Source: Paragordius varius | Taxonomy: Eukaryota > Animalia > Nematomorpha | NCBI GenBank assembly: GCA_964247055.1 | Contig: OZ176055.1 | Coordinates: forward strand, 8,928,001 to 8,992,000 | Reading direction: 5' to 3' | Length of the DNA stretch: 64,000 nt | Shown: positions 18,084 through 52,666 of the stretch, piece after piece | Layout of the letters: each line of letters starts with the position of its first letter | How positions within the stretch are numbered: position 1 is the stretch's first letter | Translations under genes and position numbers: made by a program | Notes under the pieces: model-generated | Seen by the model: only the letters and a program-made list of their open reading frames with translations | Told to the model about the DNA's origin: nothing | The model's database searches: none

Positions 18084-19474
18084 CTAAATGATGGTAATAA
18101 TTTTAATACATAGACAAAAAAGAATTATGTAATTTTTAAAGACGTATATATATTAAATATGACTTGATAAAAGCGAATAATTTTCTTCGGAAATATCCAA
18201 AACCGAATTAGAGTTCGACATTGATAGTATAATTAGATTATATGATTGATTAAATTAATAATTTCAAAGAAATTAAATTATAAATCCTTTTTTTGCTAAT
18301 AAATTATTGGTTTGCTAAACTATTTTTTCCCCATTTATTTTTATTTTTGATTGCAATCATGACGACTTTTCTATTGCAGTTATTTTACGAGATAAAATAA
18401 AATCACATATAAGTTTCCTATTATTAATTTTCCCTAAGGGGTCGCCACACTTTAACATTTTTTTGTGCAACGCAGTTTATAATTTCCACATTCAATCTTA
18501 AACCTATCTGGAACTAACTAATAATAAATGTAATATTAATTCTGATAAAAAGTTATATATTATATATGATAGATATTATCTTTGCATCAATAATAATCAG
18601 ACAAATTTTATTATATATTGTCCTGCTCTCCAATACTCAGAAATTGGATTTATCAAAAAGATGTAGATATAAGCATCATTGTTATAGCAATTGACTGTTT
18701 TTTTATAAAAAAAATGGAGATCAAAAATTTGAAGTTATAAAAAATTTAAATATTTATGTCATGATTTGTAACAATAATTCCTGAGAGAATATCAATTTGT
18801 AACGCTTAAATAACCAAATGTAGTATTTTGATCATTATCATATTATTTGCATATAGAGAAGTCACACAGTGTTAGCTTTAAATTTCTCCTTGGAAATTTA
18901 TTTCTTGTTTTTATTATTGTTATAATTTTTTGTTTTTATAGATTTCATCTTAAAAATTATTTTTGGATAAAAAATGAGAAAAAGTTTATAACGTGTTAAA
19001 AAATGTTTTTTTTAAAACTTTTAATTCAATAAAAAACTGGGTTTTAGTGTAAAAGGTTTTTTTTGAAGAACTGAAATGTTGAGGGATATCGAGTCGCGGT
19101 TTTTTAGCAAAATATTTTCTTCGGACATTTTTCTATTATATCGATATAATGTTCTTTCCTATCATTTTTACATAAAAAATTATTAACTAAAACTATGGAC
19201 TTGGGTTGTATCACAATCACCCATATATAATATATATTTATCAAGAAAAAAGTTTTTTATTTTTTATTACAAATCTGACTAATAATGAGACTAAGTGTAT
19301 TAAACAAAAATTATTAAATTGAACTATCTCCACAAATTTTGATACATAGTAGTATCTATTTCAATGAATTAATTTTATTAACAATTATTTCTTTTGTGTT
19401 TATTTTATCCATTAAAAAAGATATTACCTACCGTGAACATGAATTGAAAATTTTGGATAGAGTTTAATTTTATT

Positions 19475-19751
19475 TTACGGACAAAACGTAAAAATATAAA
19501 GACAAATATTTTTTACTAAAACACAACCCCATACTTTTAAAACCTTAATGTTTTCCATATAAGCTACTTATAGTTATAATTGTAAAATATAGAATTGATT
19601 GTGTTAGATTCTATATCTCTATTCACTTTGTCTTAAACAATGAGTTATATTTATATAAATCTACATTTAAAAAGTATGAATGTCTTTTAGAAAAAAAGGA
19701 TTTGTCTTTATATTTTTGCATTTTGTCCGTATAATTTCAATTTTTACTGTA
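19475..19751. mobile_element. TA-CAGT family MITE
   Basis: Inverted arms acggacaaaacgtaaaaatataaagacaaa / tttgtctttatatttttgcattttgtccgt; ends ttttactgta. Confidence 0.7.
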
Positions 19752-20715: not shown

Positions 20716-20961
20716 TACAGTAAAAATTGAAATTATACGCAAACGTTAAATTATAAAGATAAAATATTTTTTTCAGAAGACAACCATACTTTTTTGAACC
20801 TTAATTCAACATATTAAAAATATATAATAACAATCGTAAATTGTATACTTTGGCGTTTAAAACATTGTATATTTAAAAAATCAAGTATGGTTGTATTTTA
20901 GAAAATAATAGTTTTCTTTATATTTTTACTTTTTGTACGTATAATTTCAAATTTTACTCTA
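20716..20961. mobile_element. TA-CAGT family MITE
   Basis: tacagtaaaaattgaaattatacg ... cgtataatttcaaattttactcta TIRs, 246 bp. Confidence 0.75.
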
Positions 20962-24208: not shown

Positions 24209-24807
24209 GTTTAAATAGGCTATATTTATTTTGTTAGTTTTCGTTATTTCGAGTACTTATTAGGGGTTTTCTCTTTGGTTGATTCTTACAAAAATCCACT
24301 ATTCATACCTAGTGGATATTATTTATTTTTAAAATGATTGGTTGCCCTGTGTGAATTTCAGATGGATGTTGGAGAGCTACTTTTAGTAGAATATACTGTT
24401 ATGGGATTGGACCATTTGTATTTACCTAATCTCATTCGATTTAATGGTAATCTAACTTTATTCTGTGAATTGGTTAACTTGGCATGTCCATTGCCTGGCT
24501 TTGCTTGCAAATCTCTCCTATGGGCTCTACGATTACTTATTGTGACCTTCGCCATATTTGGCATAATTAAGGATAGCTTGCGGGATAAGTTGCAGAGCTT
24601 GTGCAACCTGTCCGGATCTATCACACCATACATAAGCCCTTTTAGATTTTTAATACTTGGCTCTTAGCTTGTTGAGTATCTTATTTTATTTAATGTTAAT
24701 ACCATAGAGCTCTTGTTTTTCCATTCTTTACCAAATATTTATACCCATTTAACGAAATAAAGTAAATTTTTGATAAAATAAAATATACACGACTGTATGT
24801 GTTAAAA

Positions 24808-25627
24808 GTCTAAATGTATTTAAATAAACCTAGGGATTTAGACCCCTTCGGAATTTGGATTGGTTATTTTAACATTGAACAATTTTTTTAAATAAGCTAT
24901 GCTTCAAGTAACGTACAAAAGTGATAATAGCTTAAAATTTGTAGGAGTGTATTTGATCATGCTTTAAATGCCATTGTTTATTTATGTTACATAGCAGGAA
25001 GAGCGTTTTTTATTAGTCATTTAGTGTGAAGCTTGTTTGGAAAAGGATCAAAAATATAGTTGTGCCCGTATATGTTTGGACCATTTATCTTAACGATCTT
25101 CATTTTTAACGGCGAGCACTACGGAGCTTGGATATTTATAAATATTGCTTCAAAGCTCTCGAAAAAAATAATAAAACGTTTTAACAATATTTTATAATAT
25201 ATTGAATTTTAAAAGTAATCTTGAGTTATTAGTCGCTCGCTAATTTAAGGTCACCTTATTAAAAATACCAAAAATGCTGTTGATTATGCGTAAATTAAAT
25301 TTTTTTAACTAAATTACAAAAATTACACTTAGCCATGAAAACGTGTAAATATTTTAAATGCCGTGTGTAAAATTTTGCTGATTACATAGTGCACAAAATC
25401 AAGGAGTATATAATTTATTTTTATAAAAGAATATATTATGCATAAATGCCTCAAAGTTCACGTCATTGTTGTTGGAAAGTGATTTAAACATTATACTACT
25501 TTTGAGTTGAGTCTTTATCAAAATAAGTAGCAATCTTAGAGCACATTATGTTAAATACAGTATGCTCATTTATATTCGTGAATTCTCAATATTTTTGACA
25601 AATTGTCAACACGGTAGTGTATGGGTA
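24808..25627. repeat. ~820-bp dispersed repeat, inverted relative to the copy at 51846-52666
   Basis: Collinear reverse-complement similarity (e.g. gttaaatacagtatgctcattta; gtgcacaaaatcaaggagtata), visibly more diverged than the 26389/54313 pair. Confidence 0.8.
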
Positions 25628-26388: not shown

Positions 26389-28150
26389 TGATATCAAATT
26401 GCAGATATTCAAAATTTTTATGGCGCATTTACGGCAAAGCGTTTATTTAAGTAAACTAACCCACGAAGAGTAAAAAAATTTGAGACGGTTGGAATACATC
26501 TAAAAATTATTTTTTTAAAAAATATCGGTTTTATTATATGTAGTTATTTGGAAAAAAATTATTTAACACAATGTGCGCAATTCATTTTTTTGTTATAGAG
26601 TCGTAACCACAAAAGTATAAATAACTTTCTTAATAATGACATGTAAGGGGCAAAATCAAAAGACCATGATAATCCTGTTATATTTTTTATCAAATATATA
26701 TTCATAAGGTTGATTTTGTGCAAGCTGTGTAATTCAAAAACCATATGCTAAAAAGGTATGGTTGTTATTAAAAATTATTTGCTTTTGGTTTTGAATTTTT
26801 GTCTGTACAATCTGAATTTTAACTGAATATCGACTATATTTATGTAAATGATTGTTAAAATAAATCTCGGTAACTCTTCTACCCACTCCAAAATGGGCAG
26901 TATTTATAAAATGCACACCAAAGCCCTAGGGTCGCTCAATAACTATTTTTATGATAAAAATAAGTTATTTTTAAAAAATTTATTATACAAAATTTCGTTA
27001 AAATACATTAGTTTGAAATTTAAAATATGGTGGAAACGATATGAAAACAGTTTAAGATATAATAGATCCATATAACTTCCAAGAGCATTAATATTCCTTG
27101 GTTGGTTCTTCCAATTATTTACAATCACAGTAGGAATATTCAAAGGATATCACCTAGCCATATCAGATTAAATGACATTACAGATAAAAACGATTTGTAT
27201 CATATAAAAATATTTTACGCAGAGATATTCGTAACAAAATAAATGAATGTATTCAATGTCACTTATTAATTTGTTTCGAATATATTTTTATATATTAAAC
27301 TTTTAAGTATCCGATTGAAGAAATATCTGTATATTTAAATATTTTTATCATATTAATATTATTAGTGTAACCTAGAGTTATATAGAATTTAAATTTAATA
27401 ATTTTATTATAACAATCATTTTATATTGATTGTCTACTATTACTTAAGTAATTAATTGGTTTAAAAAAATTAAAAATGAAACGTAAATCTTCTGATGAAT
27501 TAAAAACTCAATCAAAAAAACAAAAAATATCTCAAAACACGGCATCTAAAATAAAAAGTACACCCATTAAAAGGAAAGGCAAACAGTCAACATCTAGCAA
27601 GAAAGCGGAAAGCAAATCCAGAAAGATAGGATTGCAAAATAAAATTGTTAAGGGAAAAAGTTGTATAAACGGAGTTCCGTAACAAAACCTATAAAATCGA
27701 TAAAACATAAGACTAAACCAGTTTTAAAATCAACAAGAAAAGTAAAATCCCTAAGGCAGAACATAACAACCAAACATAAGAGCTCTCAATCAAATAACAA
27801 AAATTCCAAAGTGAATCGCAAAAATGAAATGCCAAAAGTAAATAAAAAAGGGATAAAGTTTTGCAAAAAACGTGTATTGAAAGATAAGAAAAACGCGGAA
27901 TCCAATAAGAGATTTAAAATGGGTGAAGACATACCTCTGGAAATCAAGTCATCAGATATGAACTTAAGTATCCTGTGTAATAGTTCGATTTCAGAGTTAA
28001 AGATTGAGAAAAAAATAGACAACACTATAAGTGAACATATTATTATAACTAATAAAAACGTTACTGCCCTACGAATAACCCGGAAAAATGCATCAGCTAA
28101 ACAAGAAATTCTGGAAAATGTTGTTATAACCCCAAGAAGTGAAACCAATT
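26389..28150 (+). repeat. Duplicated unit (1.1 kb upstream region plus basic-protein gene head), inverted copy at 54313-56101
   Basis: Continuous reverse-complement alignment from tatcaaattgcagatattc (26392 vs 56101) through the ORF into the first repeat monomers. Confidence 0.92.
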
Positions 28151-28227
28151 GTCTTGAAAATGTTGTTATAATCCCAAGAAGTCAAACCAATTGTCTGGAA
28201 AATGTTGTTATAATCCCAAGAAGTTAA
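27476..28227 (+). pseudogene. Disrupted gene for a Lys/Ser-rich basic protein with C-terminal 14-aa tandem repeats; function unknown
   Basis: ORFs 27476-27682 and 27661-28227 join once a 1-nt deletion (aagttgtat vs aagtttgtat in all other copies) is repaired. 18 K + 3 R in the first 62 residues. TAA at 28225 in the third repeat. Confidence 0.7.
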
Positions 28228-31200
28228 ACCAATTGTCTGGAAAACGTTGCTCTAGCCTCAAGAAGTGAAACCACCAATTGTCTGGAAAATGTTGTTCTAG
28301 CCCCAAAAGGTGAAGCCAATTGTCTAGAAAATGTTGGAATAATCACAAGAAGTGAAACCAATTGTCTGGAAAATGTTGTTATAACCCCAAGAAGTGAAAC
28401 CAATTGTCTAGAAAATGTTGTTATAAACCCAAGAAGTGAAGCCAATTGTCTACAAAATGTTGTTATAACCCCAAGAAGTGAAACCACCAATTGTCTGGAA
28501 AACGTTGTTCTAGCCTAAAAAGTGAAGCCAATTGTCTAGAAAATGTTATAACCCCAAGAGGTGAAACCAATTGTCTAGAAAATGTTGTTATAACCCCAAG
28601 AAGTGAAACCAATTGTCTGGAAAATGTTGTTCTAGCCCCAAGAAGTGAAACCAATTGTGTGGAAAATGTTGCTATAATCCCAAGAAGTGAAACCAATTGT
28701 CTGGAAAATGTTGTTATAACCCCAAGAAGTGAAACCAATTGTCTAGAAAATGTTGTTATAATCCCAAGAAGTGAAACCAATTGTCTGGAAAATGTTGTTA
28801 TAATCCCAAGAAGTTAAACCAATTGTCTGGAAAACGTTGCTCTAGCCCCAAAAGGTGAAGCCAATTGTCTAGAAAATGTTGTTCTAGCCCCAAGAAGTGA
28901 AACCAATTGTCTGGAAAATGTTGTTATAATCCCAAGAAGTGAAACCACCAATTGTCTGGAAAACGTTGTTCTAGCCTAAAGAAGTGAAACCAAATCTCTA
29001 GAAAATGTTGTTATAACCCCAAGAAGAAGCCAATTGTCTACAAAATGTTGTTATAATCCCAAAAGCAAAACCAATTGTCTGGAAAATGTTGTTCTAGCCC
29101 CAAGAAGTGAAACCACCAATTGTCTCGAAAATGTTGTTCTAGCCCCAAGAAAAGAAACCAATTGCCTAGAAAATGTTGTTATAACCCCAAGAAGTGAAAC
29201 CAATTGTCTAGAAAATGTTGTTATAACCCCAAGAAGTGAAACCAATTGTCTAGAAAATGTTGTTAATATAAAAGAGTGAAACCACCAATTTTCTGGAAAA
29301 TGTTGTTCTAGCCCCAAGAAGTGAAACCACCAATTGTCGGGAAAATGTTGTTCTAGGCCCAAGAAGTGAAGCCAACTATCTAGAAAATGTTGTTATAATC
29401 CCAAGAAGTGAAACCAATTGTCTGGAAAATGTTGTTCTAGCCCCAAGAAGTGAAACCAATTGTCTGGAAAATGTTGTTATAATCCCAAGAAGTGAAACCA
29501 ATTGTCTAGACAATGTTGTTATAGCCCCAAGAAGTGAAACCAAATGTCTAAAAAAATTTGTTATCACCCCAAGAAGTTAAGCTAATTGTCTACAAAATGT
29601 TGCTATAATCCCAAGAAGTGAAACCAATTGTCTGGAAAATTTTGTTCTAGCCCCAAGAAGTGAAACCACCAATTGTCTGGAAATTGTTGTTCTAGCCCCA
29701 AGAAGTGCACCAATTGTCTGGAAAATTTTGTTCTAGCCCCAAGAAGTGAAATGAAATGTCTAGAAAATGTTGTTATAACTCCAAGAAGTGAAGCCAATTG
29801 TCTGGAAAATGTTGTTCTGGCCCCAAGAAGTGAAACCACCAAATGTCTGGAAAATGTTGTTATAACCCCAAGAAGTGAAACCAAATGTCTAGAAAATGTT
29901 GTTATAACCCCAAGAAGTGAAGCCAATTGTCTGGAAAATTTTGTTCTAGCCCCAAGAAGTGAAACCACCAATTGTCTGGAAAATGTTATTCTAGCCCCAA
30001 GAAGTGAAGCCAATTGTCTAGAAAATGTTGTTATAACCGCAAGAATGAAACAATTATCCAGAAAATGTTGTTATAATCCCAAGAAGTGAAACTAATTGTC
30101 TAGATTTCTAGACAATCTAGATTTCTAGACAATCTAGATTTATAGACAATCTAGATTTATAGACAATCTAGATTTATAGACAATTGGTTTCACATCTTGG
30201 GATTATAACAACATTTTCCAGACAATTGGTTTCACTTCTTGGGATTATAACAACATTTTCTATACAATTGGCTTCACTTCTTGGGGCTAGAACAACATTT
30301 TCCACAAAATTGGTGGTTTCACTTCTTGGGATTATAACAACATTTTCTAGACAGTTGGTTTCACTTCTTGGGGCTAGAACAACATTTTCCAGACAATTGG
30401 TTTTGCTTCTTGGGATTATAACAACATTTTGTAGACAATTGGCTCCTTCATGGTGTTATAACAACATTTTTTAGACTTTATTTCTTGGAGCTAGAACAAC
30501 ATATTCCAAACATTCGGGTTCACTTCTTGGGTGTAAAACAACATTTTTCAGACAATTGGTTTCACTTCTTGGGATTATAACACTATTTTCTATACAATTG
30601 GTTTCACTTCTTGGGGATATAACAACATTTTCCAGACAATTGGTGGTTTCACTTCTTGGGATTATAACAACATTTTCTATACAATTGGTTTCACTTCTTG
30701 GGGATATAACAACATTTTTCAGACAATTGGTGGTTTCACTTCTTGGGTGTAAAACAACATTTTTCAGACAATTGGTTCACTTCTTGGGATTATAACAACA
30801 TTTTCTAGACAATTGGCTTTACTTCTTGGGGTTAGAACAACATTTTCCAGACAATTGGTGGTTTCACTTCATGGGGCTAGAACAACATTTTTTAGACAAT
30901 TGGTATTTTCACTCCCGGGGGCTAGAACAACATTTTCCAAACATTCTGTTTCACTTCTTGGGATTATAACAACATTTTCTAGACAATTGGTTTCACTTCT
31001 TGGGGCTAGAACAACATTTTCCAGACAATTGGTTTCACTTCTTGGGTTTAAACAACATTTTCCAGAAATTCTTGTGTAGCTGATGCATTTGTCCGGGTTA
31101 TTCGTGCAGTAACGTTTTTATTAGTTATAATAATATGTTCACTTATAGTGTTATCGATGATCTGATGTCTTGATTTCCAAAGGTATGTGTTCACCTTTTT

Positions 31201-34200
31201 TAAATCTCTTATTGGATTCCGCGTTTTTCTTATCTTTCATTACACATTTTTGGGAAAACTTTATCTCTTTATTTACTTTAGGCATTCATTTTTGCGATTC
31301 ACTTTGGGATTTTTGTTATTTGATTGAGAGCTCTTATGTTTGGTTTTCTGCCTTAGAGATTTTACATGTCTTGTTGGTTTTAAAACTGGTTTAGTCTTAT
31401 GCTTTACCGATTACATAGGTTTTGTTAGGGAACTCCGTTTATACAAACTTTTTCGCATAACATAAATGTTGTTATAATCCCAAGAAGTGAAACCAATTGT
31501 CTGGAAAATGTTGTTCTAGCCCCAAGAAGTAAAACCACCAATTGTCTCGAAAATGTTGTTCTAGCCCCAAGAAGTGAAACCACCAATTGTTTGGAAAATG
31601 TTGTTATAACCCCAAGAAGTGAAACCAATTGCCTAGAAAATGTTGTTATAACCCCAAGAAGTGAAACCAATTGTTTAGATGTTGTTATAACCCCAAGGAG
31701 TGAAACCAATTGTCTGGAAGATGTTGTTATAATCCCAAGAAACGAAACCAATTGTCTAGAAAATGTTGTTCTAGCCCCAAGAAGTGAAACCAATTGTCTA
31801 GATGTTGTTATAACCCCAAGAAGTGAAATCAATTGTCTGGACGATGTTGTTATAATCCCAAGAAACGAAACCAATTGTCTGGAAAATGTTGTTCTAGCCC
31901 CAAGAAGTGAAACCAATTGTATAGAAAGTGTTGTTATAACTCCATGAAGAAAAACCACCAATTGTCTAGAAAATGTTGTTATAACCCCAAGAAGCGAAAC
32001 CGAATGTTTGGAATATGTTGTTCTAGCTCCAAGAAGTGAAACCACCAATTGTCTAGAAAATATTGTTATAACCCCAAGAAGTGAAACCAATTGTCTAGAT
32101 GTTGTTATAACCCCAAGAAGTGAAACCAATTGTCTGGAAGATGTTGTTCTAGCCCCAAGAAGTAAAACCAATTGTCTGGAAAATGTTGTTCTAGCCCCAA
32201 GAAACAAAACCAATTGTCTGGAAAATGTTGTTATAACCCCAAGAAGTGAAACCACCAATTGTCTAGAAAATGTTGTTATAACCCCAAGAAGTGAAACCAA
32301 TTGTTTAGATGTTGTTATAACCCCAAGGAGTGAAACCAATTGTCTGGAAGATGTTGTTATAATCCCAAGAAACGAAACCAATTGTCTGGAAAATGTTGTT
32401 CTAGTCCCAAGAAGTGAAACCAATTGTCTAGATGTTGTTATAACCCCAAGAAGTGAAACCAATTGTCTGGAAGATGTTGTTATAATCCCAAGAAACGAAA
32501 CCAATTGTCTGGAAAATGTTGTTCTAGCCCCAAGAAGTGAAACCACCAATTGTCTAGAAAATGTTGTTATAACCCCAAGAAGTGAAACCAATTGTCTGGA
32601 AAATGTTGTTCTAGGCCCAAGAAGTGAAACCACCGATTGTCTGGAAAATGTGGTTATAGCCCCAAAAAGTGAAACCACATTGTCCTGAAAATGTTGTTCT
32701 AGCTCCAAGAAAAAACCAATTGTCTAAAAAATGTTGTTCTAGCCCCAAGAAGTAATACCAATTGTCAGGAAAATGTTGTTCTAGCCCAAAGAAACAAAAC
32801 CAATTGTCTGGAAAATGTTGTTCTGGCCCCAAGAAGTGAAACCACCAAATGTCTGGAAAATGTTGTTATAACCCCAAGAAGTGAAACCAAATGTCTAGAA
32901 AATGTTGTTATAACCCCAAGAAGTGAAGCCAATTGTCTGGAAAATTTTGTTCTAGCCCCAAGAAGTGAAACCACCAATTGTCTGGAAAATGTTATTCTAG
33001 CCCCAAGAAGTGAAGCCAATTGTCTAGAAAATGTTGTTATAACCGCAAGAATGAAACAATTATCCAGAAAATGTTGTTATAATCCCAAGAAGTGAAACTA
33101 ATTGTCTAGATTTCTAGACAATCTAGATTTCTAGACAATCTAGATTTATAGACAATCTAGATTTATAGACAATCTAGATTTATAGACAATTGGTTTCACA
33201 TCTTGGGATTATAACAACATTTTCCAGACAATTGGTTTCACTTCTTGGGATTATAACAACATTTTCTATACAATTGGCTTCACTTCTTGGGGCTAGAACA
33301 ACATTTTCCACAAAATTGGTGGTTTCACTTCTTGGGATTATAACAACATTTTCTAGACAGTTGGTTTCACTTCTTGGGGCTAGAACAACATTTTCCAGAC
33401 AATTGGTTTTGCTTCTTGGGATTATAACAACATTTTGTAGACAATTGGCTCCTTCATGGTGTTATAACAACATTTTTTAGACTTTATTTCTTGGAGCTAG
33501 AACAACATATTCCAAACATTCGGGTTCACTTCTTGGGTGTAAAACAACATTTTTCAGACAATTGGTTTCACTTCTTGGGATTATAACACTATTTTCTATA
33601 CAATTGGTTTCACTTCTTGGGGATATAACAACATTTTCCAGACAATTGGTGGTTTCACTTCTTGGGATTATAACAACATTTTCTATACAATTGGTTTCAC
33701 TTCTTGGGGATATAACAACATTTTTCAGACAATTGGTGGTTTCACTTCTTGGGTGTAAAACAACATTTTTCAGACAATTGGTTTCACTTCTTGGGATTAT
33801 AACAACATTTTCTAGACAATTGGCTTTACTTCTTGGGGTTAGAACAACATTTTCCAGACAATTGGTGGTTTCACTTCATGGGGCTAGAACAACATTTTTT
33901 AGACAATTGGTATTTTCACTCCCGGGGGCTAGAACAACATTTTCCAAACATTCTGTTTCACTTCTTGGGATTATAACAACATTTTCTAGACAATTGGTTT
34001 CACTTTTTGGGGCTAGAACAACATTACCAGACAATTGGTTTCACTTCTTGGGTTTAAACAACATTTTCCAGAAATTCTTGTGTAGCTGATGCATTTGTCC
34101 GGGTTATTCGTGCAGTAACGTTTTTATTAGTTATAATAATATGTTCACTTATAGTGTTATCGATGATCTGATGTCTTGATTTCCAAAGGTATGTGTTCAC

Positions 34201-37200
34201 CTTTTTTAAATCTCTTATTGGATTCCGCGTTTTTCTTATCTTTCATTACACATTTTTGGGAAAACTTTATCTCTTTATTTACTTTAGGCATTCATTTTTG
34301 CGATTCACTTTGGGATTTTTGTTATTTGATTGAGAGCTCTTATGTTTGGTTTTCTGCCTTAGAGATTTTACATGTCTTGTTGGTTTTAAAACTGGTTTAG
34401 TCTTATGCTTTACCGATTACATAGGTTTTGTTAGGGAACTCCGTTTATACAAACTTTTTCGCATAACATAAATGTTGTTATAATCCCAAGAAGTGAAACC
34501 AATTGTCTGGAAAATGTTGTTCTAGCCCCAAGAAGTAAAACCACCAATTGTCTCGAAAATGTTGTTCTAGCCCCAAGAAGTGAAACCACCAATTGTTTGG
34601 AAAATGTTGTTATAACCCCAAGAAGTGAAACCAATTGCCTAGAAAATGTTGTTATAACCCCAAGAAGTGAAACCAATTGTTTAGATGTTGTTATAACCCC
34701 AAGGAGTGAAACCAATTGTCTGGAAGATGTTGTTATAATCCCAAGAAACGAAACCAATTGTCTAGAAAATGTTGTTCTAGCCCCAAGAAGTGAAACCAAT
34801 TGTCTAGATGTTGTTATAACCCCAAGAAGTGAAATCAATTGTCTGGACGATGTTGTTATAATCCCAAGAAACGAAACCAATTGTCTGGAAAATGTTGTTC
34901 TAGCCCCAAGAAGTGAAACCAATTGTATAGAAAGTGTTGTTATAACTCCATGAAGAAAAACCACCAATTGTCTAGAAAATGTTGTTATAACCCCAAGAAG
35001 CGAAACCGAATGTTTGGAATATGTTGTTCTAGCTCCAAGAAGTGAAACCACCAATTGTCTAGAAAATATTGTTATAACCCCAAGAAGTGAAACCAATTGT
35101 CTAGATGTTGTTATAACCCCAAGAAGTGAAACCAATTGTCTGGAAGATGTTGTTCTAGCCCCAAGAAGTAAAACCAATTGTCTGGAAAATGTTGTTCTAG
35201 CCCCAAGAAACAAAACCAATTGTCTGGAAAATGTTGTTATAACCCCAAGAAGTGAAACCACCAATTGTCTAGAAAATGTTGTTATAACCCCAAGAAGTGA
35301 AACCAATTGTTTAGATGTTGTTATAACCCCAAGGAGTGAAACCAATTGTCTGGAAGATGTTGTTATAATCCCAAGAAACGAAACCAATTGTCTGGAAAAT
35401 GTTGTTCTAGTCCCAAGAAGTGAAACCAATTGTCTAGATGTTGTTATAACCCCAAGAAGTGAAACCAATTGTCTGGAAGATGTTGTTATAATCCCAAGAA
35501 ACGAAACCAATTGTCTGGAAAATGTTGTTCTAGCCCCAAGAAGTGAAACCACCAATTGTCTAGAAAATGTTGTTATAACCCCAAGAAGTGAAACCAATTG
35601 TCTGGAAAATGTTGTTCTAGGCCCAAGAAGTGAAACCACCGATTGTCTGGAAAATGTGGTTATAGCCCCAAAAAGTGAAACCACATTGTCCTGAAAATGT
35701 TGTTCTAGCTCCAAGAAAAAACCAATTGTCTAAAAAATGTTGTTCTAGCCCCAAGAAGTAATACCAATTGTCAGGAAAATGTTGTTCTAGCCCAAAGAAA
35801 CAAAACCAATTGTCTGGAAAATGTTGTTCTAGCTCCAAGAAGTGAAACCACCAATTGTCTAGAAAATGTTATTATAACCCCAAGAAGTGAAACCAATTGT
35901 CTGGAAAATGTTGTTCTAGGCCCAAGAAGTGAAACCACCAATTGTCTGGAAAATGTTGTTCTAGCCCCAAAAAGTGAAACCACATTGTCCTGAAAATGTT
36001 TTTCTAGCTCCAAGAAAAAACCAATTGTCTAAAAATGTTGTTCTAGGCCCAAGAAGTGAAACCAATTGTCTGGAAAATGCTAGCCCCAAAAACTGAAACC
36101 ACATTGTCCTGAAAATGTTGTTCGAGCTCCAAGAAAAAACCAATTGTCGGGAAAATGTTGTTCTAGCCCCAAGAAACAAAACCAATTGTCTGGAAAATGT
36201 TGTTATAATCCCAAGAAACGAAACCAATTGTCTAGAAAATGTTGTTCTAGCCCCAAGAAGTGAAAATAATTGTCTAGATGTTGTTATAACCCCAAGAAGT
36301 GAAACCAATTGTCTGGACGATGTTGTTATAATCCCAAGAAACGAAACCAATTGTCTGGAAAATGTTGTTCTAGCCCCAAGAAGTGAAACCAATTGTATAG
36401 AAAGTGTTGTTATAACTCCATGAAGTGAAACCAATTGTCTAGAAAATGTTGTTATAATCCCAAGAAGCGAAACCGAATGTTTGGAATATGTTGTTCTAGC
36501 TCCAAGAAGTGAAACTACCAATTGTCTAGAAAATATTGTTATAACCCCAAGAAGTGAAACCAATTGTCCAGATGTTGTTATAACCCCAAGAAGTGAAACC
36601 AATTGTCTGGAAGAAGTTGTTCTAGCCCCAAGAAGTAAAACCAATTGTCGGGAAAATGTTGTTCTAGCCCCAAGAAACAAAACCAATTGTCTGGAAAATG
36701 TTGTTATAACCCCAAGAAGTGAAACCACCAATTGTCTAGAAAATGTTGTTATAACCCCAAGAAGTGAAACCAATTGTTTAGATGTTGTTATAACCCCAAG
36801 GAGTGAAACCAATTGTCTGGAAGATGTTGTTATAATCCCAAGAAACGAAACCAATTGTCTGGAAAATGTTGTTCTAGCCCCAAGAAGTGAAACCAATTGT
36901 CTAGATGTTGTTATAACCCCAAGAAGTGAAACCAATTGTCTGGAAGATGTTGTTATAATCCCAAGAAACGAAACCAATTGTCTGGAAAATGTTGTTCTAG
37001 CCCCAAGAAGTGAAACCACCAATTGTCTAGAAAATATTGTTATAACCCCAAGAAGTGAAACCAATTGTCTAGATGTTGTTATAACCCCAAGAAGTGAAAC
37101 CAATTGTCTGGAAGATGTTGTTCTAGCCCCAAGAAGTAAAACCAATTGTCGGAAAAATGTTGTTCTAGCCCTAAGAAACAAAACCAATTGTCTGGAAAAT

Positions 37201-40200
37201 GTTGTTCTAGCCCCAAGAAGTGAAACCACCAATTGTCTAGAAAATGTTGTTATAACCCCAAGAAGTGAAACCAATTGTCTGGAAAATGTTGTTCTAGGCC
37301 CAAGAAGTGAAACCACCGATTGTCTGCAAAATGTGGTTATAGCCCCAAGTGAAACCACATTGTCCTGAAAATGTTGTTCTAGCTCCAAGAAAAAACCAAT
37401 TGTCTAAAAAATGTTGTTCTAGCCCCAAGAAGTAATACCAATTGTCAGGAAAATGTTGTTCTAGCCCCAAGAAACAAAACCAATTGTCTGGAAAATGTTG
37501 TTCTAGCTCCAAGAAGTGAAACCAATTGTCTAGATGTTGTTATAACCCCAAGTAACGAAACTCATTGTCTGGTAAATGTTGTTCTAGCCCCAAGAAGTGA
37601 AACCAATTGTCTGGAAAGTGTTGTTATAACCCCAAGAAGAGAAATTTATTGTCTAGAAAATGTTGTTATAACCCCAAGAAGTGAAACCAATTGTCTAGAA
37701 AATGTTGTTATATTATCAAGAAGTGAAACCATCAATTTTCTCTAAAATGTTGTTCTAGCCCCAAGAAATGAAACCACCAATTGTCTGGAAAATGTTGTTC
37801 TAGCCCCAAGAAAAAGCCAACTGTCTAGAAAATGTTGTTATCACCCCAAGAAGTGAAGCCAATTGTCTACAAAATGTTGCTATAATCCCAAGAAGTGAAA
37901 CCAATTGTCTGGAAAATGTTGTTCTAGCCCCAAAAAGTGAAACCACCAATTGTCTGGAAATTGTTGTTCTAGCCCCAAGAAGTGCACCAAATGTCTGGAA
38001 AATGTTGTTATAACCCCAAGAAGTGAAACCAAATGTCTAGAACCCAAGAAGTGAAGCCAATTGTCTACAAAATGTTGTTATAACCCCAAGTGAAACCAAT
38101 TATCTAGAAAATGTTGTTATAACCCCAAGAAGTGAAAACAATTGTCTGGAAAATGTTCTTCTAGCCCCAAAAAGTGAAACCAATGGTCTAGAAAATGTAG
38201 TTGTAATCCCAAGATGTAAAACCAATTGTCTGGAAAATGTTGTTCTAGCACCCAGAAATGAAAATACCAATTGTCTGGAAAATTTTGTTCTGGCCCCAAG
38301 AAGTGAAACCACCAATTGTCTGGAAAATGTTATTCTAGCCCCAAGAAGTGAAAGCAATTGTCTATAAAATGTTGTTATAACCGCAAGAATGAAACCAATT
38401 ATCCAGAAAATGTTGTTATAATCCCAAGAAGTGAAACTAATTGTCTAGATTTCTAGACAATCTAGATTTCTAGACAATTGGTTTCACATCTTGGGGTTAT
38501 AACAACATTTTCCAGACAATTGGTTTCACTTCTTGGGATTATAACAACATTTTCTATACAATTGGTGGTTTCACTTCTTGGAGCTAGAACAACATTTTCC
38601 ACAAAATTGGTGGTTTCACTTCTGGGGATTATAACAACATAGACAATTAATTTCACTTCTAAGGGTTATAACAACATTTTCCAGACAATTCACTTCTTGG
38701 GGCTAGTACAACATTTTCCATACAATTGGTGGTTTCACTTCGGGGAATTATAACAACACTTTCTATACAATTGGTTTCATCTTGGGGCTAGAACAACATT
38801 TTCCAAACATTCGGTTTCACTTCTTGATTATAACAACATTTTCCAGACAATTGGTTTCACTTCTTGGGATTATAACAACATTTTCCAGACAATTAGTTTC
38901 TCTTCTTGGGGTTATAACAACATTTTCTAGACTTTACTTCTTGGAGCTAGAACAACATATACCAAACATTCGGTTTCGCTTCTTGGGATTATAACAACAT
39001 TTTCTAGACAATTGGTTTCACTTCATGGAGTTATAACAACACTTTCTATACAATTGGTTTCACTTTTTGGTGCTAGAACAACATTTTTCAGACAATTAGT
39101 GGTTTCACTTCTTGGGTGTAAAACAACATTTTTCAGACAATTGGTTTCACTTCTGGGATTATAACAACATTTTCCAGACAATTGGTTTCATTTCTTGGGG
39201 CTAGAACAACATTTTCCAGACAATTGGTGGTTTCACTTTTTGGGATTATAACAAGATTGTCTAGACAATTGGTTTCACTTCTTGAGGTTATAACAACATT
39301 TTCTAAACTTTACTTCTTGGAGCTAGAACAACATATTCCAAACATTCGGGTTCACTTCTTGGGTGTAAAACAACTTTTTTCAGACAATTGGTTTCATTTC
39401 TTGGGATTATAACAACATTTTCTATACAATTGGTTTCACTTCTTGGGGCTAGAACAACATTTTCCAAACATTTGGTTTCACTTCTTGATTATAACAACAT
39501 TTTCCAGACAATTGGTTTCTCTTCTTGGGGTTATAACAACATTTTCTAGACTTTACTTCTTGGAGCTAGAACAACATATTCCAAACATTCAGTTTCACTT
39601 CTTGGGATTATAACAACATTTTCTAGACAATTGGTTTCACTTCATGGTTATAACAACACTTTCTATACAATTGGTTTCACTTTTTGGTGCTAGAACAACA
39701 TTTTTCAGACAATTGGTGGTTTCACTTCTTGGGTGTAAAACAACATTTTTCAGACAATTGGTTTCACTTCTTGGGATTATAACAACATTTTCTATACAAT
39801 TGGTTTCACTTCTTGGGGATATAACAACATTTTTCAGACAATTGGTGGTTTCACTTCTTGGGTGTAAAACAACATTTTTCAGACAATTGGTTTCACTTCT
39901 GGGATTATAACAACATTTTCCAGACAATTGGTTTCACTTCTTGGGGCTAGAACAACATTTTCCAGACAATTGGTGGTTTCACTTTTTGGGATTATAACAA
40001 CATTGTCTAGACAATTGGTTTTACTTCTTGGGGTTATAACAACATTTTCTAGACTTTACTTCTTGGAGCTAGAACAACATATTCCACACATTCGGTTTCA
40101 CTTCTTGGGATTATAACAACATTTTCTAGACAATTGGTTTCACTTCATGGAGTTATAACAACACTTTCTATACAAATGGTTTCACTTTTTGGTGCTAGAA

Positions 40201-41736
40201 CAACATATTCCAAACATTTGGGTTCACTTCTTGGGTGTAAAACAATATTTTTCAGACAATTGGTTTCACTTCTTGGGATTATAACAACATTTTCTATACA
40301 ATTGGTTTCACTTCTTGGGGTTAGAACAACATTTTCCAGACAATTGGTGGTTTCACTCCCGGGGGCCAGAACAACATTTTCCAAACATTCTGTTTCACTT
40401 CTTGGGATTATAACAACATTTTCTAGACAATTGGTTTCACTTCTTGGACTTATAACAACAATTTCTATACAATTGGTGTCACTTCTTGGGGCTAGAACAA
40501 CATTTTCCAGACAATTGGTTTCACTTCTTGGGGTTAAACAACATTTTCCAGAAATTCTTGTGTAGCTGATGCATTTGTCCGGGTTATTCGTGCAGTAACG
40601 TTTTTATTAGTTATAATAATATGTTCACTTATAGTGTTGTCGATGATCTGATGTCTTGATTTTCAAAGGTATATCTTCACCTTTTTTAAATCTCTTATTG
40701 GATTCCGCGTTTTTCTTATCTTTCATTACACATTTTTGGGAAAACTTTATCTCTTTATTTACTTTAGGCATTTCATTTTTGCGATTCACTTTGGGATTTT
40801 TGTTATTTGATTGAGAGCTCTTATGTTTGGTTGTTATGTTCTGCCTTAGGGTTTTTACATGTCTTGTTGGTTTTAAAACTGGTTTAGTCTTATGCTTTAC
40901 CGATTTCATAGGTTTTGTTAGGGAACTCCGTTTATACAAACTTTTTCGCATAACATAAATGTTGTTATAATCCCAAGAAGTGAAACCAATTGTCTGGAAA
41001 ATGTTGTTATAACCCCGAGAAGTAAAACCAATTGTCTGGAAAATAATGTTATAACCCCAAGAAGTGAAACCACCAATTGTCTGGAAAATGTTGTTCTAGC
41101 CCCAAGAAGTGAAACCACCAATTGTCTAGAAAATGTTGTTCTAGCCCCAAGAAGTGACACCAATTGTATAGAAATTGTTGTTATAAGTCCAAGAAGTGAA
41201 ACCAATTGTCTAGAAAATGTTGTTATAATCCCAAGAAGTGAAACAGAATGTTTGGAAAATGTTGTTCTGGCCCCCGGGAGTGAAACCACCAATTGTCTGG
41301 AAAATGTTGTTATAACCCCGAGAAGTAAAACCAATTGTCTGGAAAATAATGTTATAACCCCAAGAAGTGAAACCACCAATTGTCTGGAAAATGTTGTTCT
41401 AGCCCCAAAAAGTGAAACCACCAATTGTCTGGAAAATGTTGTTATAACCCCAAGAAGTGAAACCACCAATTGTCTAGAAAATGTTGTTATAACCCAAAGA
41501 AGTGAAACCACCAATTGTCTCGAAAATGTTGTTCTAGCCCCAAAAAGTGAAACCACATTGTCCTGAAAATGTTGTTCTAGCCCCAAGAAGTAAAACCAAT
41601 TGTCGGGAAAATGTTGTTCTAGCCCCAAAAAGTGAAACCACATTGTCCTGAAAATGTTGTTATAACCCCAAGAAGTGAAACCACCAATTGTCTAGAAAAT
41701 GTTGTTCTAGCCCCAAGAAGTGAAACCACCAATTGT
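28111..41736. repeat. 42-bp (39/45-bp variants) coding-type tandem array with alternating orientation
   Basis: Monomer gaaaatgttgttataaccccaagaagtgaaaccaattgtctg. Forward blocks 28111-30098, 31466-33104, 34472-38443, 40959-41736; reverse blocks 30184-31066, 33190-34072, 38478-40551. Each reverse block is followed by a reversed partial gene head (31067-31463, 34073-34469, 40552-40956). Confidence 0.97.
29794..35830. repeat. 3006-bp higher-order tandem duplication
   Basis: ORF-track pairs are offset by exactly 3006 (30184/33190, 31170/34176, 31425/34431, 32008/35014). Only a few differences are visible (near 30777/33783 and 31000-31020/34005-34026). Confidence 0.95.
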
Positions 41737-41991
41737 ACTTATTTTAAGCTAAAATCCAAAGGTATTAATTTAGCCAATAATTTAAAATAAAAATGGCGTC
41801 GACGCATTTTGATATTAAACTTTTTTTTTAAAACGAAATTTTATTTAGATATTTTGGCTTAATTATATAATTTTTATCAGGACAGAAGCATAAATTTAAA
41901 TTGGGACCGTTTCTTTCAGTATTTTTATAAAAATATTAACTTAATTTAAGTCTGGGGTATATAGATACCCCAATTTAAATCGAAGTGTTAA
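41737..41991. mobile_element. Internally deleted TTAA-MITE fragment abutting the end of the array
   Basis: Ends cgaagtgTTAA at 41991; reverse complement of parts of 49099-49480. Confidence 0.75.
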
Positions 41992-42924
41992 TATATTCAA
42001 TAAAATATTTATCTATTGTATATATCTAAAATAATAATTATGTAGCATTAAAATTCCAGATAAAATCAGAAATTATGTTAATATTGTTTCGCGAGTTGTA
42101 TCTCGGGTGCATTCTCTCACCAACTTGATCGGTAATGCAATTAAACGGATATCTTTTAATATGTTCACAGCCTACATTTATAAATAATATAACCATCCGA
42201 TGGTAAATTTTTTCAAGCTCCTGGGTTAATATTTTATACTCCTCTGACTTATGTGATTATAAAAAGAAAAAAATATGGCCCAATTATTTTATACCTGCCC
42301 CTGGGTAAGGAGTTACCCGCCAAAAACTGCGCCACTGCTTGAAATATTACCCGTAACTAGGTAAAAAATTTAAGTCAGGCGTTTTATTATTAGCCGTTAA
42401 TTTGGAGCCTTTATGCCTTAAAAACACCATCATATAATGATTATTTAGTGTTGAAGTTTTTTTTGAATAACCCATGAGACGATATCAAAAATGATTCCAA
42501 ATATTTGCCCTATAAAGGCAAAGAATTTAGCTCAGCGCTTTTTCCATATAGGTCTATGGGTAGGGGTCTACCGGTTTAAAACTGAGATACCATACAGAAA
42601 TGGCGTGGTTTTGGAGCTAATTTTCAAAAACTTAAGAAGCCATACGAGTTCAGTTAAACACATTTCTGAGGAATTTATATCATTTTTTCCTTTAAAAAGG
42701 GACAAATGAAGTACTTTTTATATCCCTTAATCCCACCTGTGTGAACAAATTTTAAAATAAAACTTTTAACCATGATTTTATTAAATCCAATTAGAGTTGA
42801 ATTCCTTCAATAAGAGACAGTTTAAATAAGGTCAATTTCGAGTAAACAATATTTGAGCCTATGCAAAAACCCGTAAAAGAATAATTAAAAGCAATCTTTT
42901 TAAATAAGAATAATTATCAGTGAG

Positions 42925-47053: not shown

Positions 47054-47415
47054 GATATATTATTATAAAAGCCAAAAACTGTATTGATATAAAAAAATTA
47101 GCATAAACTATTATTTAAATATGTATAATATGCAAAAATTATAAAATAATTTACACTTAGCAAAGTATATTCCCGTCTAACGCCTATAAAATATCTTTAC
47201 AAACCATTATTATCATTTTACTAACTCTATTTTACGCTTCATGATCTTTTCACCTATTTGTCGTCCGCGATGACAATTTCAGAGCTCCATCTTCTGAATA
47301 AAATACTGTTTAGAAAATTTTTTAAGTTCAAGCTAAATTATAAACACTGCCCTATGAGACAAAAATATTTTTAGTTTTGTGACAGCTCCAAAATATAATT
47401 AAACTAATTCTGATT

Positions 47416-48001
47416 TTAACACTTCGATTCAAATTGGGGTATCTAAATACCCCAGACTAAATTTAAATTAAAATTTTTATAAAACTACTGAACGAAACGG
47501 TCGCAATTTAAATTTGTGCTTCTATCCTGATAAATATTATATAAATATGCCAAAATATCTTGATAAAATTTGGTTTTGAAAAAAAAGCTCCATCTCAAAC
47601 TACTTCGACGCCATTTTTATTTAACAAAATTTTTGCAAAATATCGTTTCTATTTAATTTTAAGGCTAAAACTAAAGCTAATTTTTATATAAATTACATCT
47701 AACAATGATAGAAATAGAGAAAGCGGTTTAGTTTGTATAATTTTTCAATTTTACAATTTGACACATGCCACGTTGACGAAATTTTTACCTTTCGGTTTTA
47801 GCTTAAAATGTGTAATATCAAGTATTGAATAAAATTTTTTATATATTTCGGTTTATTAATGTTATATAAGTGAAAAATTTTGCCATGGTTTCGATTCCTT
47901 CCATACTTTTTAAAGTATTTAATTTTAAACAGGCCTGGGGTTACCAACTACCCCAATTTGAATCGAAGGACTAAAATGAGCGTGTTGCATTTAAGTGTTA
48001 A
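47416..48001. mobile_element. TTAA-flanked MITE, full copy
   Basis: TTAA-CACTTCGATTC ... AAGTG-TTAA, homologous to 985-1559. Confidence 0.82.
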
Positions 48002-48500: not shown

Positions 48501-49098
48501 TAACAAACACTCTTCAGAAAATGTTATTGGTAATCCATTAAATAAAACTTTATCTGAAAAGGCCGTTGATCTTTGTATTAAAAATTATAAACTGCCTAAA
48601 AATGCTGCCTATTCATAAAAAATCTTGACAAAGATTCAGCCTCATTCATGTACTTTCAAAATCATTATAAACTCTGTAAAGCCAAAGCTAAGGCTGGTAT
48701 AGCTAATGGGCCTTTAATCAAATAATTTTTTAAGATAACTACTTTATAAACCTATTATCTGCAAAGGAAAAAAAAGCTTTTGAAGCTTTAAAAAATTCAA
48801 CACTGGTTTTGTAGGTATAATATATATTTAAATATTGGAATCACATTAGTCAGAGGAGTATAAAATAATCCAAGAGCTTGTAGAAATTTACCATCGTATT
48901 ATATTATTTTATAAATGTAGTCTGTGAACATATTGAAAGATATCCGTTTGATTGCATTACCGCTCAAGTTGGTGAGAGAATGCACCCGAGATACAACTCG
49001 CGAAACAATATTAACATGATTTCTGATTTTATCTGGATTGTTAATGCTACATAATTATTATTTTAATATACAATAGATAAATATTTATTTTGAATATA

Positions 49099-49666
49099 TT
49101 AACACTTCGATTCAAATTGGGGTATCTATATAGCCCAGACTTAATTTAAGTTAATATTTTTATAAAAATACTGAAAGAAACGGTCCCAAGTTAAATTTAT
49201 GCTTGTGTCCTAATAAAAATTATATAATTAAGCCAAAATATCTAAATAAAATTTCGTTTTGAAAAAAGGTTAATATCAATGCGTCGACGCCATTTTCATT
49301 AAAAAGATTATTGCAAAATATCGTATTCATGTAATTTTACAGGTCAAATTAAAGCTAATTTTTTTATTTAAATTAAATCTAACATTGATAGATATAAAAA
49401 AAGTGGTTTATTTTTTCAATTTTACCATTGCATTTATGTCACGTTTACTAAATTATTACCTATGGATTTTAGCTTGAAATAAGTATTATCAAGTATTTTT
49501 GAATAAAATTTTTATATAATTTGGTTTATTAATGTTAAATAGGTGTAAAATTTTGCCATGGTTTCGATTCCCTCCATATTTTTTGAAGAATTTAATTATA
49601 AATAGGCCTCAGGTATCCAACTACCCCAATTTGAATCACCAAGATTGTGTTGTATCCAAGTGTTAA
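49099..49666. mobile_element. TTAA-flanked MITE, full copy
   Basis: TTAA-CACTTCGATTC ... GTATCCAAGTG-TTAA. Confidence 0.82.
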
Positions 49667-49835
49667 TTAAAAATTTGTAGCTAAAAAGAAAATATTGAGA
49701 ATAATATCTATATGTATTTATACAATTTTTTGTGGAAGTGCCTACAAAGATATGCGAATCGATATATATATATAATCAACACTAAAATTTGTACAAAAAA
49801 TTTATTTACATGAATAACAAAATTCTAGGTATTAA

Positions 49836-51845
49836 TAGGGTGACCAGTTTTTTTAAAGTTTGAAGGAAAAAGCGGGAGAAATTTGCGAAAAGGGGAGGGG
49901 GCATGGGGGTACAAGCAAAAAAATTTATACAAAAAATTTATTGTAATAATTATTTATTTTCACAAATACATTATTATAAATGTAAATAAATATTTTATTC
50001 CTTGGTTTCAGGTTATTCTTACCTTATTCAATAAATTTACATGTGCACGAACAAAGGGTGAAGCGATTGTATGCAATGTCCTTTCATCTGCATTTTCTGA
50101 AATAGAAAAAGTTTTGCAGAAAATAAATTTCATATCCCTCTGATGCACAAAATTATTTCTCACTCTCGTTCAGCCCAAAATTCTGACATATTTTACTTCA
50201 ATGAATATTCTGGAAAAAATTAAAACAGAATCATCGCAAAGTGCGCTCTGTGGAAATGCAAGGAGCGGCACAAAAAATATTTTTAATAATTTAGCGAATA
50301 ATCTTAATCAAAACATAAATGAGGGATACACAACGCTATTCAAACAGCTGCTGATTCATAACCCCTGGATGTGGAAAATGTATTTGTTAAAATCCTTGGA
50401 TATTGTGAACTCGTTGGTTAGCTCTTTTGTCAGCTATTAAAAAAAATTAAAAATGTATGATCGCCTAAAATCCTATTTTTTTATCACAAGACAAATGCTA
50501 AAATTCCGAATCAAGAAAGGTTAGAAAATAATTTTAAACCATTACCTAATCGCAATATTATAAATCATCCAGAAAAATAAGGCTTAATGAATGGCCAGGA
50601 TATAAAAATGTTTTATTGAAAATATTATAACGCGTATCGAGGATATATCAAAATAGGAATATATTTTAACATCTACATTTTCCACATCTAGGGGTAACAA
50701 ATCAGCAGCTGTTTGAAAATCGTTGTGTATTATATGCGCTGCACACCCAACGCCAATAATGTTTTGATTAAGGTTATCTGTTAATTTATGAAAAATATTT
50801 TTTGTTCCCATCCTTGCTTTTTCACAGAAGTTCGTATTGGTGTTGTGAGCGCAATATGCGATGATTGTGTCTTTTAAAATATTTTTTCTAGAATCATTAT
50901 TGAAGTAAAATTTATGTCGGAATTTTCACCGGCTAGAGAAATAGCTAAAATTTTAATTTTTTCGGTTTCTGGATCAAAATATCTAATTAAAGTGGGAAAT
51001 AGTTTTATTTGCTTGTGTGATGCATCGTGTAGCGATATAAAATTAATTTTCAGCGAATCTTTTTGTATTTCAGAAAATGCATGTGGCGAAAGGACAATGC
51101 ATTCAATGGCTTCAGCCTTTGTTCAGGCACATGTATATATTTTTATTGAATAAAGTAGGAATAACCTGTGAGCAATCCATAGATCTAAAGGAATGATTGT
51201 GATTAAAGGCATGAAACGATAAAACGTTTTCGACTAGTGCCAAATTCTTTTTTTCCTGTCAAAATCGGTTTTTCTATTAAAATCGCTCATTTTCTAACAT
51301 GATGCCGCCATATCTAAACATTTTTTATGTTTCTGTGTTTCCATATGCTTTGTAATGTCATGCTTGCCGTCACGTGTTAGGAACCCCTCGCATAAAGAGC
51401 ATTTAACAAATAATTCCTTCTTTGTTTTTTTAATAAAAGGAAATTTTTTAATTAATTCATCCTTAATCTTACAACCTCTTTATGTACTCATATTTTTAAA
51501 CTAATATTTGTTTAATAAAATATTATATTACCTTCGCTGCTAATTTGTGGTATTAATTTGTTTATTGATAATGTTGGCAGTAGAAGTAGGAAGCAGTGTA
51601 CAATTATATGATATAAATTGGAAAAAAATAAATATTTTTATTTTAAAATAAAAAATTTTAATTTAAAATTGATATAGATAAAGATAACTAATGATAAAAA
51701 ATTTAAACGGATAAAAAAATTGATTTTTTTCAAAAAAATTAAATGTATTTAAATTTTTTTATATAATCGTCAAAACGCGGGTCATTTCGAAAACGTAGCG
51801 GGACGCGGGACAAAGTGTGAAAAAGCGGGACGTCTGGTCACCCTA
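49836..51845. mobile_element. hAT-superfamily relics bounded by TAGGGTGACCAG termini (two opposed fragments)
   Basis: Minus strand 51420-50584: CSLCEGFLTRDGKHDITKHMETQKHK zinc finger and GVGCAAHIIHN...AADLLPLDVE. Plus strand ~50020-50330: a diverged homologous segment (KFTCARTKGEAIVCNVL; GTKNIFNNL). No TSD. Confidence 0.75.
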
Positions 51846-52666
51846 CCCATACACTCTGTTGACAATTTCAAATTCACCATAAATGAGCATACTGTATTTA
51901 ACATAAAGATTGCTATTTTTTGATATGGAGTCACCTTAAAAGTAGAATGATTTTTTAATTAATTTTTCTAACAACAAAGGCGTGAACCTTGAGTCATTTA
52001 TGCATAATATATTTTTTTATAAAAATAAATTATCCAGGTTCAAAAAAAGGATGTAGCAGACCCATATACTCCTTGATTTTGTGCAATATGTAATCAGCCC
52101 AATTTTATACATGGCATTTATATTTACATGTTTACCTGAAAATTTGGTATGCTATGTTTAATTTTTATAGTTAAATTTTTTAAATTACGCATTCAGTAGT
52201 TTTGGTATTTTTAAGGTGATGCTGATAGCAAGCGACTAATTACTCAAAAATACTTTTATAATTTAATATAAAAACACCTTAATTGGATTTTATTATTTTA
52301 TTGGAAAGCATTGAAGCAATATTTATAAACATACAAGCTCCGCAGTTCTCGACGTTAAAAAAGAAGATCATGAAGATAAATGGTCCAATTCCGGGCAAAA
52401 CTATACTATTGATCCGTTTCCAATTAGATCCTAAATGACTAATAATACGCTTTTCACTTGTGTATAACTAAATAAACACCAATGGCATTTAATGCATGAT
52501 AAATACACTCCGGCAAATTTTAGGCTATTGTAACTTTCCTACGTTACCACCTCTGATTGAAGTGCATCAGAGCTTATTTTAAAAAATTGTTCAATGTTAA
52601 AAATAATTATTCTGAATTCTAAAGGAGTCTAAACCCCTATGTTTATTTAAACACATTTAGACTTTT
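51846..52666. repeat. ~820-bp dispersed repeat, inverted relative to 24808-25627
   Basis: Reverse-complement similarity to 24808-25627. Confidence 0.8.

Follow-up and report, generated by a model that had tools for sequence, protein, structure and literature searches.

Most knowledge of inverted triplications comes from yeast cultures and from patients. Junctions of the ODIRA type form at inverted repeats of 2 to 14 bp, with a spacing of 40 to 80 bp preferred in yeast (PMC10766183), and in yeast and human an inverted triplication can be followed by the microhomology-mediated loss of one palindrome arm (PMC10766186, PMC10766183). Arm-to-arm conversion has been proposed for the mitochondrial palindromes of nematomorphs (PMC6649704). 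In Drosophila, hairpin RNAs act against protamine-derived genes, and hairpin-RNA loci are sometimes arranged as tandem multicopy clusters (PMC10317233).

The locus described here lies in a window of 64,000 nucleotides (the whole stretch of DNA that was analyzed), which has a GC content of 29% and carries animal genes, including a STAT gene and an F-box/WD40 exon. The locus may be read as a natural, fixed record of an inverted triplication over evolutionary time, with the steps ordered at one place: arm deletion, growth of a hairpin spacer, tandem multiplication in which the junctions were reused, and transfer of sequence between opposite orientations. Every step has an already known mechanism. 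The locus also appears to show the expansion of a coding-type repeat after the loss of its reading frame.

The STAT gene (4872-5317) contains four consecutive GT-AG introns of ∼25 to 31 nt with approximate boundaries, and the F-box plus WD40 exon (59611-60006) is FBXW5-like. MITE-like short imperfect inverted repeats are found at 11189-11414, 19472-19735, and 20716-20961, and further copies are scattered at 24691-24797 and 61324-61456. A 96-bp tandem duplication with 98% identity lies at 2578-2769, decayed DNA-transposon-like sequence lies at ∼50600-51500 (50970-51870, minus strand), and the segments 24804-25627 and 52666-51844 form an inverted match of 73%.

Layout of the locus and its junctions

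The locus begins with an upstream region (26391-27475, plus strand) and a head, termed head A (27476-28110, plus strand, ∼211 codons), which is followed by the repeat array. An inverted paralogue, termed paralogue B (54313-56101, minus strand), consists of the upstream region, a full head with its ATG at 55038, and only two monomers. It shows 88% identity with 26391-28196 over 1.8 kb, including 1.08 kb of upstream DNA; the upstream region has no further copies in the window. After the two monomers, paralogue B passes into unrelated, more GC-rich DNA (54313-54270, minus strand), which contains a small GACAAT-CT-ATTGTC hairpin resembling the palindromic core of the monomer. Its upstream boundary coincides exactly with the end of a decayed LTR retrotransposon fragment (56100-58200, minus strand) with RNase H-like and integrase pieces (Pfam rve), a polypurine tract, and then an LTR of ∼235 bp with TG...CA ends.

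A k-mer dot-plot and TRF resolve the array into seven alternating blocks, F-R-F-R-F-R-F, extending from 28110 to 41736. They contain 47, 21, 39, 21, 95, 50, and 18 monomers, respectively, giving 291 monomers in 13.6 kb, with a repeat period of 42 bp (39- and 45-bp variants occur) and a unit of 14 amino acids. The two methods agree with the seven-block layout reported in the initial annotation, which had proposed the dot-plot as a check. The term "satellite" used there probably overstates the case: it denotes a long noncoding tandem array that is abundant or spread over the genome, and within the window, the array is confined to a single locus, as a local minisatellite.

The forward blocks are F1 (28110-30104), F2 (31464-33110), F3 (34470-38449), and F4 (40957-41736), all on the plus strand; R1 (30185-31070) and R3 (38479-40556) are on the minus strand, and R2 is part of the minus-strand segment 33105-34476, which comprises the second copy of J1, R2, the second reversed head, and the second copy of J2. 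F2 is a hybrid of 32 monomers of post-J2 type and 7 monomers of the F1 tail. F3 contains internal higher-order duplications with offsets of about 630, 1470, and 1677 bp, and its tail is homologous to that of F1. F4 stops at a dispersed repeat beginning at 41737, and since the array abuts this repeat, the original 3' end is missing. Members of this dispersed family, with 70 to 91% identity, are located at 41737-42258, 48839-49676, 47413-48001, 216-1570, and 58794-59137.

Two junction types connect the blocks. J1 is found at 30099, 33105, and 38444 and J2 at 31459, 34465, and 40952, each with an identical junction sequence every time, so the threefold reuse described earlier holds for both. The J1 hairpin has arms of 10 bp and a loop of 2 nt and lies around TCTAGA, which belongs to the monomer itself. 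Copies 1 (30095-30184) and 2 of J1 contain five 17-bp units, leading to a 70-nt spacer; copy 3 (38444-38478) contains two units and has a 19-nt spacer. J2 is an AACAT-AA-ATGTT hairpin (first copy at 31459-31470) with 5-bp arms and a 2-nt loop, and an 8-bp microhomology, AAAATGTT, is shared there by the monomer and the head, the latter in the form carried by the copy at 55038. On the minus strand, the loop bases at both junctions simply continue the arm that precedes them. As a sign of one strand turning twice, this sidedness is weak evidence, amounting to about a factor of two.

The arms at these junctions are not mirror images. In the J1 arms, mismatches lie 11 and 19 bp away from the center and the register is gone after roughly one monomer, the mirror alignment of F1 with R1 scores the same as shuffled sequences, and the start of F1 is out of register with both R1 and F2. 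The forward head that a true triplication would leave after J2 is absent. Monomers 11, 13, and 14 of R1 and F2 have rare variants in common. The mirror register at J2, at first the best of 207, has a p value of 0.055 once the choice of length is corrected for, and that at J1 has a p value of 0.08. These may be faint relics of mirroring; they were identified post hoc, and correction leaves them short of significance. The colinearity of F3 and R3 was also considered as whole-arm mirroring and is due instead to a common four-monomer cassette.

Age of the inversion and order of the later events

In three of three cases, J2 follows a reversed partial head whose sequence corresponds to that from 27646 on. 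The first (31071-31462, minus strand) carries deletions of 56, 6, 3, 3, and 1 bp. The 56-bp deletion and both 3-bp deletions occur in all three copies, as do 8 private substitutions; the 6- and 1-bp deletions are limited to heads 1 and 2. This bears out the partial heads of the initial annotation, its shared deletion of ∼55 bp, and its further small deletion in the first two copies only. Because its ends are not GT-AG, the 56-bp deletion was dismissed as a spliced intron.

Over 392 gap-free columns, heads A and B differ by 7.9%, and reversed head 3 (40557-40955, minus strand) differs by 6.6% from each of them. Reversed heads 1 and 3 differ by 1.8%, as do 2 and 3, and reversed heads 1 and 2 are identical (0%). 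The nested indels and these two low values agree with the earlier proposal of a single inversion followed by two duplications. At informative sites, the reversed heads side with A 14 times and with B 14 times, without significant clustering; a mosaic of A and B finds no support (runs test, p=0.087). Judged from these distances, the inversion either dates from about the time of the A/B split or is derived from a third paralogue. Since the reversed heads do not carry the alleles of A, a recent fold-back of head A is unlikely, and an origin in cis from A is not proven, given the even count of sites and the register of the F1 start. An inversion as old as the paralogue split (∼7%, with star-shaped distances) does not fit the idea that the birth of a satellite has been captured here.

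The later steps are shown by comparison of the copies to be direct tandem duplications, with divergences of 1.8% and 0.1%, and not new fold-backs. The most recent one (29794-35830, plus strand) has a unit of 3006 bp (29794-32799 and 32800-35805); its copies show 4 differences in about 3030 bp (0.1%), one of them a homopolymer indel. The breakpoints lie inside forward blocks and show ∼25 to 31 bp of homology, for example, at 32800-32824. The older duplication has left its marks in the resemblance of the F3 tail to the F1 tail and in the divergence of 1.8% between the reversed heads. Unequal exchange is the presumed cause of both. This process leaves unchanged junctions that are reused inside direct repeats.

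Sequence has also passed between the two orientations. A 183-bp tract in F4 (41129-41311, plus strand) matches the reverse complement of 40325-40507 in R3 without a single difference. A 121-bp segment flanks this tract on both sides, at 40985-41105 and 41288-41408. A 104-bp tract in F3 (36381-36484, plus strand) is the exact reverse complement of 38962-39065, likewise in R3. Both tracts exceed 200 of 200 shuffles of monomer order; exact inverted tracts between F1 and R1 or R3 do not rise above such shuffles. The F4 tract points to a template switch across orientations or to conversion, and conversion between inverted arms is a known process. Most likely, it moved from the reversed arm into F4 by two template switches; this direction is suggested by R1, which has monomers of the same types at the corresponding position.

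The reading given moderate confidence combines one inverted triplication, an arm deletion at J2, spacer growth at J1, and unequal exchange. The starting point would be an orphan gene whose basic protein contained a 14-residue repeat; it would have undergone a single, old inverted triplication near the time at which paralogue B arose. A double U-turn of one strand, at TCTAGA of a monomer for J1 and at AACAT of the head for J2, would have produced F-R-F. Past J2, the forward head would then have been lost by a deletion through the microhomology with the monomer; such a deletion yields the observed join, because head B and the monomer both carry AAAATGTT at this place. In the center of J1, the spacer may have grown in steps of 17 bp from 2 to 19 to 70 nt, the states being observed and their order proposed. 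The arm deletion and the spacer growth would both stabilize the palindrome. Two unequal exchanges between forward blocks would later have copied J1, the R block, the reversed head, and J2, an older one at 1.8% and the very recent one of 3006 bp at 0.1%, resulting in seven blocks. Slippage and unequal exchange would have reshaped the blocks, and tracts of 2 to 4 monomers would have shifted between orientations, as the exact tracts indicate. The end state would be a noncoding minisatellite under neutral evolution.

The reversed head and the R block could instead stem from a third paralogue, located in tandem or at another place, that was joined to A through an ectopic template switch, through inversion and deletion, or through a fold-back of its own followed by fusion between arrays, with the two tandem duplications coming afterwards. 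The star-shaped head distances would be expected from such a source, as would the R-type variants found in the forward blocks after J2 and absent from F1 and the lack of register between F1 and either R1 or F2. It requires more events, the window holds no third copy, and the hairpin geometry at J1 and J2 is more easily explained by U-turns, which makes this origin unlikely while leaving it some weight. A series of recent fold-backs, in which ODIRA or BFB cycles are still converting a live gene into a satellite, is scarcely probable. BFB adds a new fold-back junction in each cycle, leaves nested, mirror-identical arms, and entails terminal loss. Alternating orientation and hairpin junctions would suit a fold-back series, yet the arms mismatch within 11 to 19 bp of the J1 center, F1 and R1 mirror each other no better than shuffled sequences, the reversed heads are ∼7% diverged, and the units are direct repeats without any new junction type. 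BFB itself was discarded: two junction types are reused by direct duplication, the arms are unmirrored, and the flanks are intact within the window. What survives of the fold-back or template-switch origin given in the initial annotation is its plausibility for the first F-R-F, where both junctions are hairpins with 2-nt loops; as an account of the seven-block pattern it is not supported, the copies of the 3006-bp unit being direct and in tandem, and BFB-type amplification is at odds with the absence of both new junctions and mirror-identical arms.

The newest 3006-bp copy might also be an error of assembly, caused by a loop in the repeat graph or by joined haplotypes, in which case the true locus would have five blocks. 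So few differences between the copies, one of them in a homopolymer, would be expected of such an error, and satellite loci are prone to misassembly (PMC5411766). Private changes relative to the common monomer types, in R1 monomer 7 and R2 monomer 2, speak mildly against it; variants that tell the copies apart lie at 30775 and 30999-31020 and at their counterparts. J1 and J2 themselves were excluded as fold-back chimeras of reads, which cannot produce them, since the arms are unmirrored and the third unit is 1.8% diverged. The error is therefore considered rather improbable, and the remaining conclusions would stand even if it had occurred.

Coding status and a possible hairpin RNA

Head A reads as a basic sequence, with lysine and arginine making up 35% of the first 150 amino acids, and its frame continues into the 14-residue repeat unit. 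The full gene head placed by the initial annotation at 27476 is present, but it is a pseudogene, with a 1-nt frameshift near 27661 and a first in-frame stop at 28225, inside F1. Head B is broken at other positions, by a +1 frameshift near its start and an in-frame TAA. No protein homologue was found among 1.84 billion representatives, in a search of 5.8 billion proteins, in the Atlas, or in the PDB, with the pieces used as separate queries or as an alignment of unjoined pieces and with a length filter narrowing two of the searches. The word "gene" therefore denotes a presumed status, because both full heads are frameshifted and the searches returned no homologue. The protein-coding origin assumed earlier accords with the reading frame, and the broken heads and missing homologues limit it to a presumption. 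An orphan gene for a basic protein is nevertheless the likely source of head and repeat.

The sense repeat is predicted to form a β-solenoid (pLDDT of 73 and pTM of 0.68, compared to a pTM of 0.24 for the antisense-frame control); AlphaFold predictions on single repetitive sequences are weak evidence. A structure search with the predicted fold gave no real match, the best hit in the PDB having an E value of 0.08 and the best in the Atlas, an unnamed cluster, a TM score of 0.56. Pfam family PF24748, the galaxin-like repeat proteins, scores 53 bits against a gathering cutoff of 28. Galaxin-like repeat proteins have di-cysteine repeats and a signal peptide. Membership was dropped on account of the single cysteine per unit, the basic N terminus, and the full-length relatives that were not found, and the score was put down to periodicity, probably of the cysteines.

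It is quite improbable that head and repeat never belonged to a protein gene of the host and represent a decayed mobile or viral insert or A-rich noncoding sequence. Such an origin would account for the lack of homologues in all of the protein and structure databases searched, for the two broken heads, and for upstream DNA conserved about as well as the head (8.6% compared to 7.2% divergence between A and B). Against it stand a stop-free run of 149 codons, a length reached in 0 of 5000 shuffles; the different places at which the two full heads are broken; and the usual monomer lengths of 39, 42, and 45, all multiples of three. A dN/dS of 0.55 between A and B, from few sites, and the higher pTM of the predicted sense fold point in the same direction, as do two negative results: no transposon domains were found, and the metagenome and viral contigs searched contained no exact monomer.

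Whatever its origin, the locus is at present noncoding as judged from its frame, because frameshifting monomers occur in every block (7 in F1). The reversed head gives dN/dS values of 0.93 against A and 1.55 against B, and the substitutions in the repeat fall into types in proportion to the opportunities for each (17/55/2 compared to 29/93/4 possible). The simplest reading is that of a neutral, unstable minisatellite without function. Antisense frames of 427 to 475 codons, longer than the sense frames, are open at 31425-32708, 34431-35714, and 35961-37388 (minus strand) and are probably by-products of the repeat.

A very low probability is assigned to the proposal that the inversion was kept and amplified because a hairpin RNA of kilobase length, transcribed from the promoter of the former gene, silences an intact, selfish family of basic-protein genes elsewhere in the genome. 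Such a locus would need a long inverted repeat capable of forming dsRNA, which is present, and further a transcript that crosses the junction, siRNAs made by Dicer, and a target that is expressed. For the segment 29650-30620, which spans J1, the folding energy is -561 kcal/mol (z=-43), a trivial consequence of any inversion, and reversed head 3 has 100 exact 21-mers in common with each full head. If true, this horsehair-worm hairpin would be an independent parallel to Drosophila Nmy and Tmy, directed against protamine-derived drivers. The value of the locus would be higher if it produces small RNAs.

Comparison with known systems

The inverted fragments of a basic-protein gene family resemble Drosophila Nmy, Tmy, hp-tHMG, and hp-CG4068 (PMC10317233). 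Unlike in those loci, both visible targets are pseudogenes, and the present locus is known from sequence alone. Drosophila Rsp (PMC5411766) likewise shows inverted blocks, higher-order duplications, and homogenization through unequal exchange and conversion. Compared to the ∼170 kb of Rsp, the array is small, its monomer is derived from a reading frame, and it has only two junction types.

The inferred F-R-F core has the central inverted copy between direct copies that is characteristic of ODIRA and DUP-TRP/INV-DUP (PMC10766186, PMC10766183, PMC4689423), and the junctions at short inverted repeats and the proposed widening of the spacer by microhomology-mediated arm loss may be further likenesses. 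Mirror-copy arms at each junction are absent, which is compatible with ODIRA only if secondary deletion and age are assumed. With arms of 10 and 5 bp and spacers of 2 nt, outside the range preferred in yeast, J1 and J2 are more like a snap-back hairpin. In contrast to ODIRA, the event described here is old and fixed, it took place in a coding-type minisatellite of less than 4 kb, and its product was copied further through direct tandem duplication. It works like an inverted triplication with secondary rearrangement; the name ODIRA proper, which also calls for a replication origin inside or next to the amplified segment, would go beyond what is shown.

Small inverted triplications, or SITs (PMC13334657), have the same DUP/INV/DUP layout with short junction homology, and their size is near that of the 183-bp patch and 121-bp duplicate in F4. 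In contrast to a SIT, the F4 patch was copied from an arm that was already inverted and hence reads in the direction of the array, and the main event is kilobase sized.

The palindromes of nematomorph mitochondria (PMC6649704), probably from the same phylum, are also inverted repeats in coding sequence. Those palindromes are mitochondrial, perfect, up to 284 bp long, and situated in working genes; the array arms, unlike them, belong to the nuclear genome, reach kilobase length, are imperfect, and have exchanged sequence only in patches. The locus would gain in value if the nuclear genome of the phylum, like its mitochondria, is unusually prone to copying from arm to arm.
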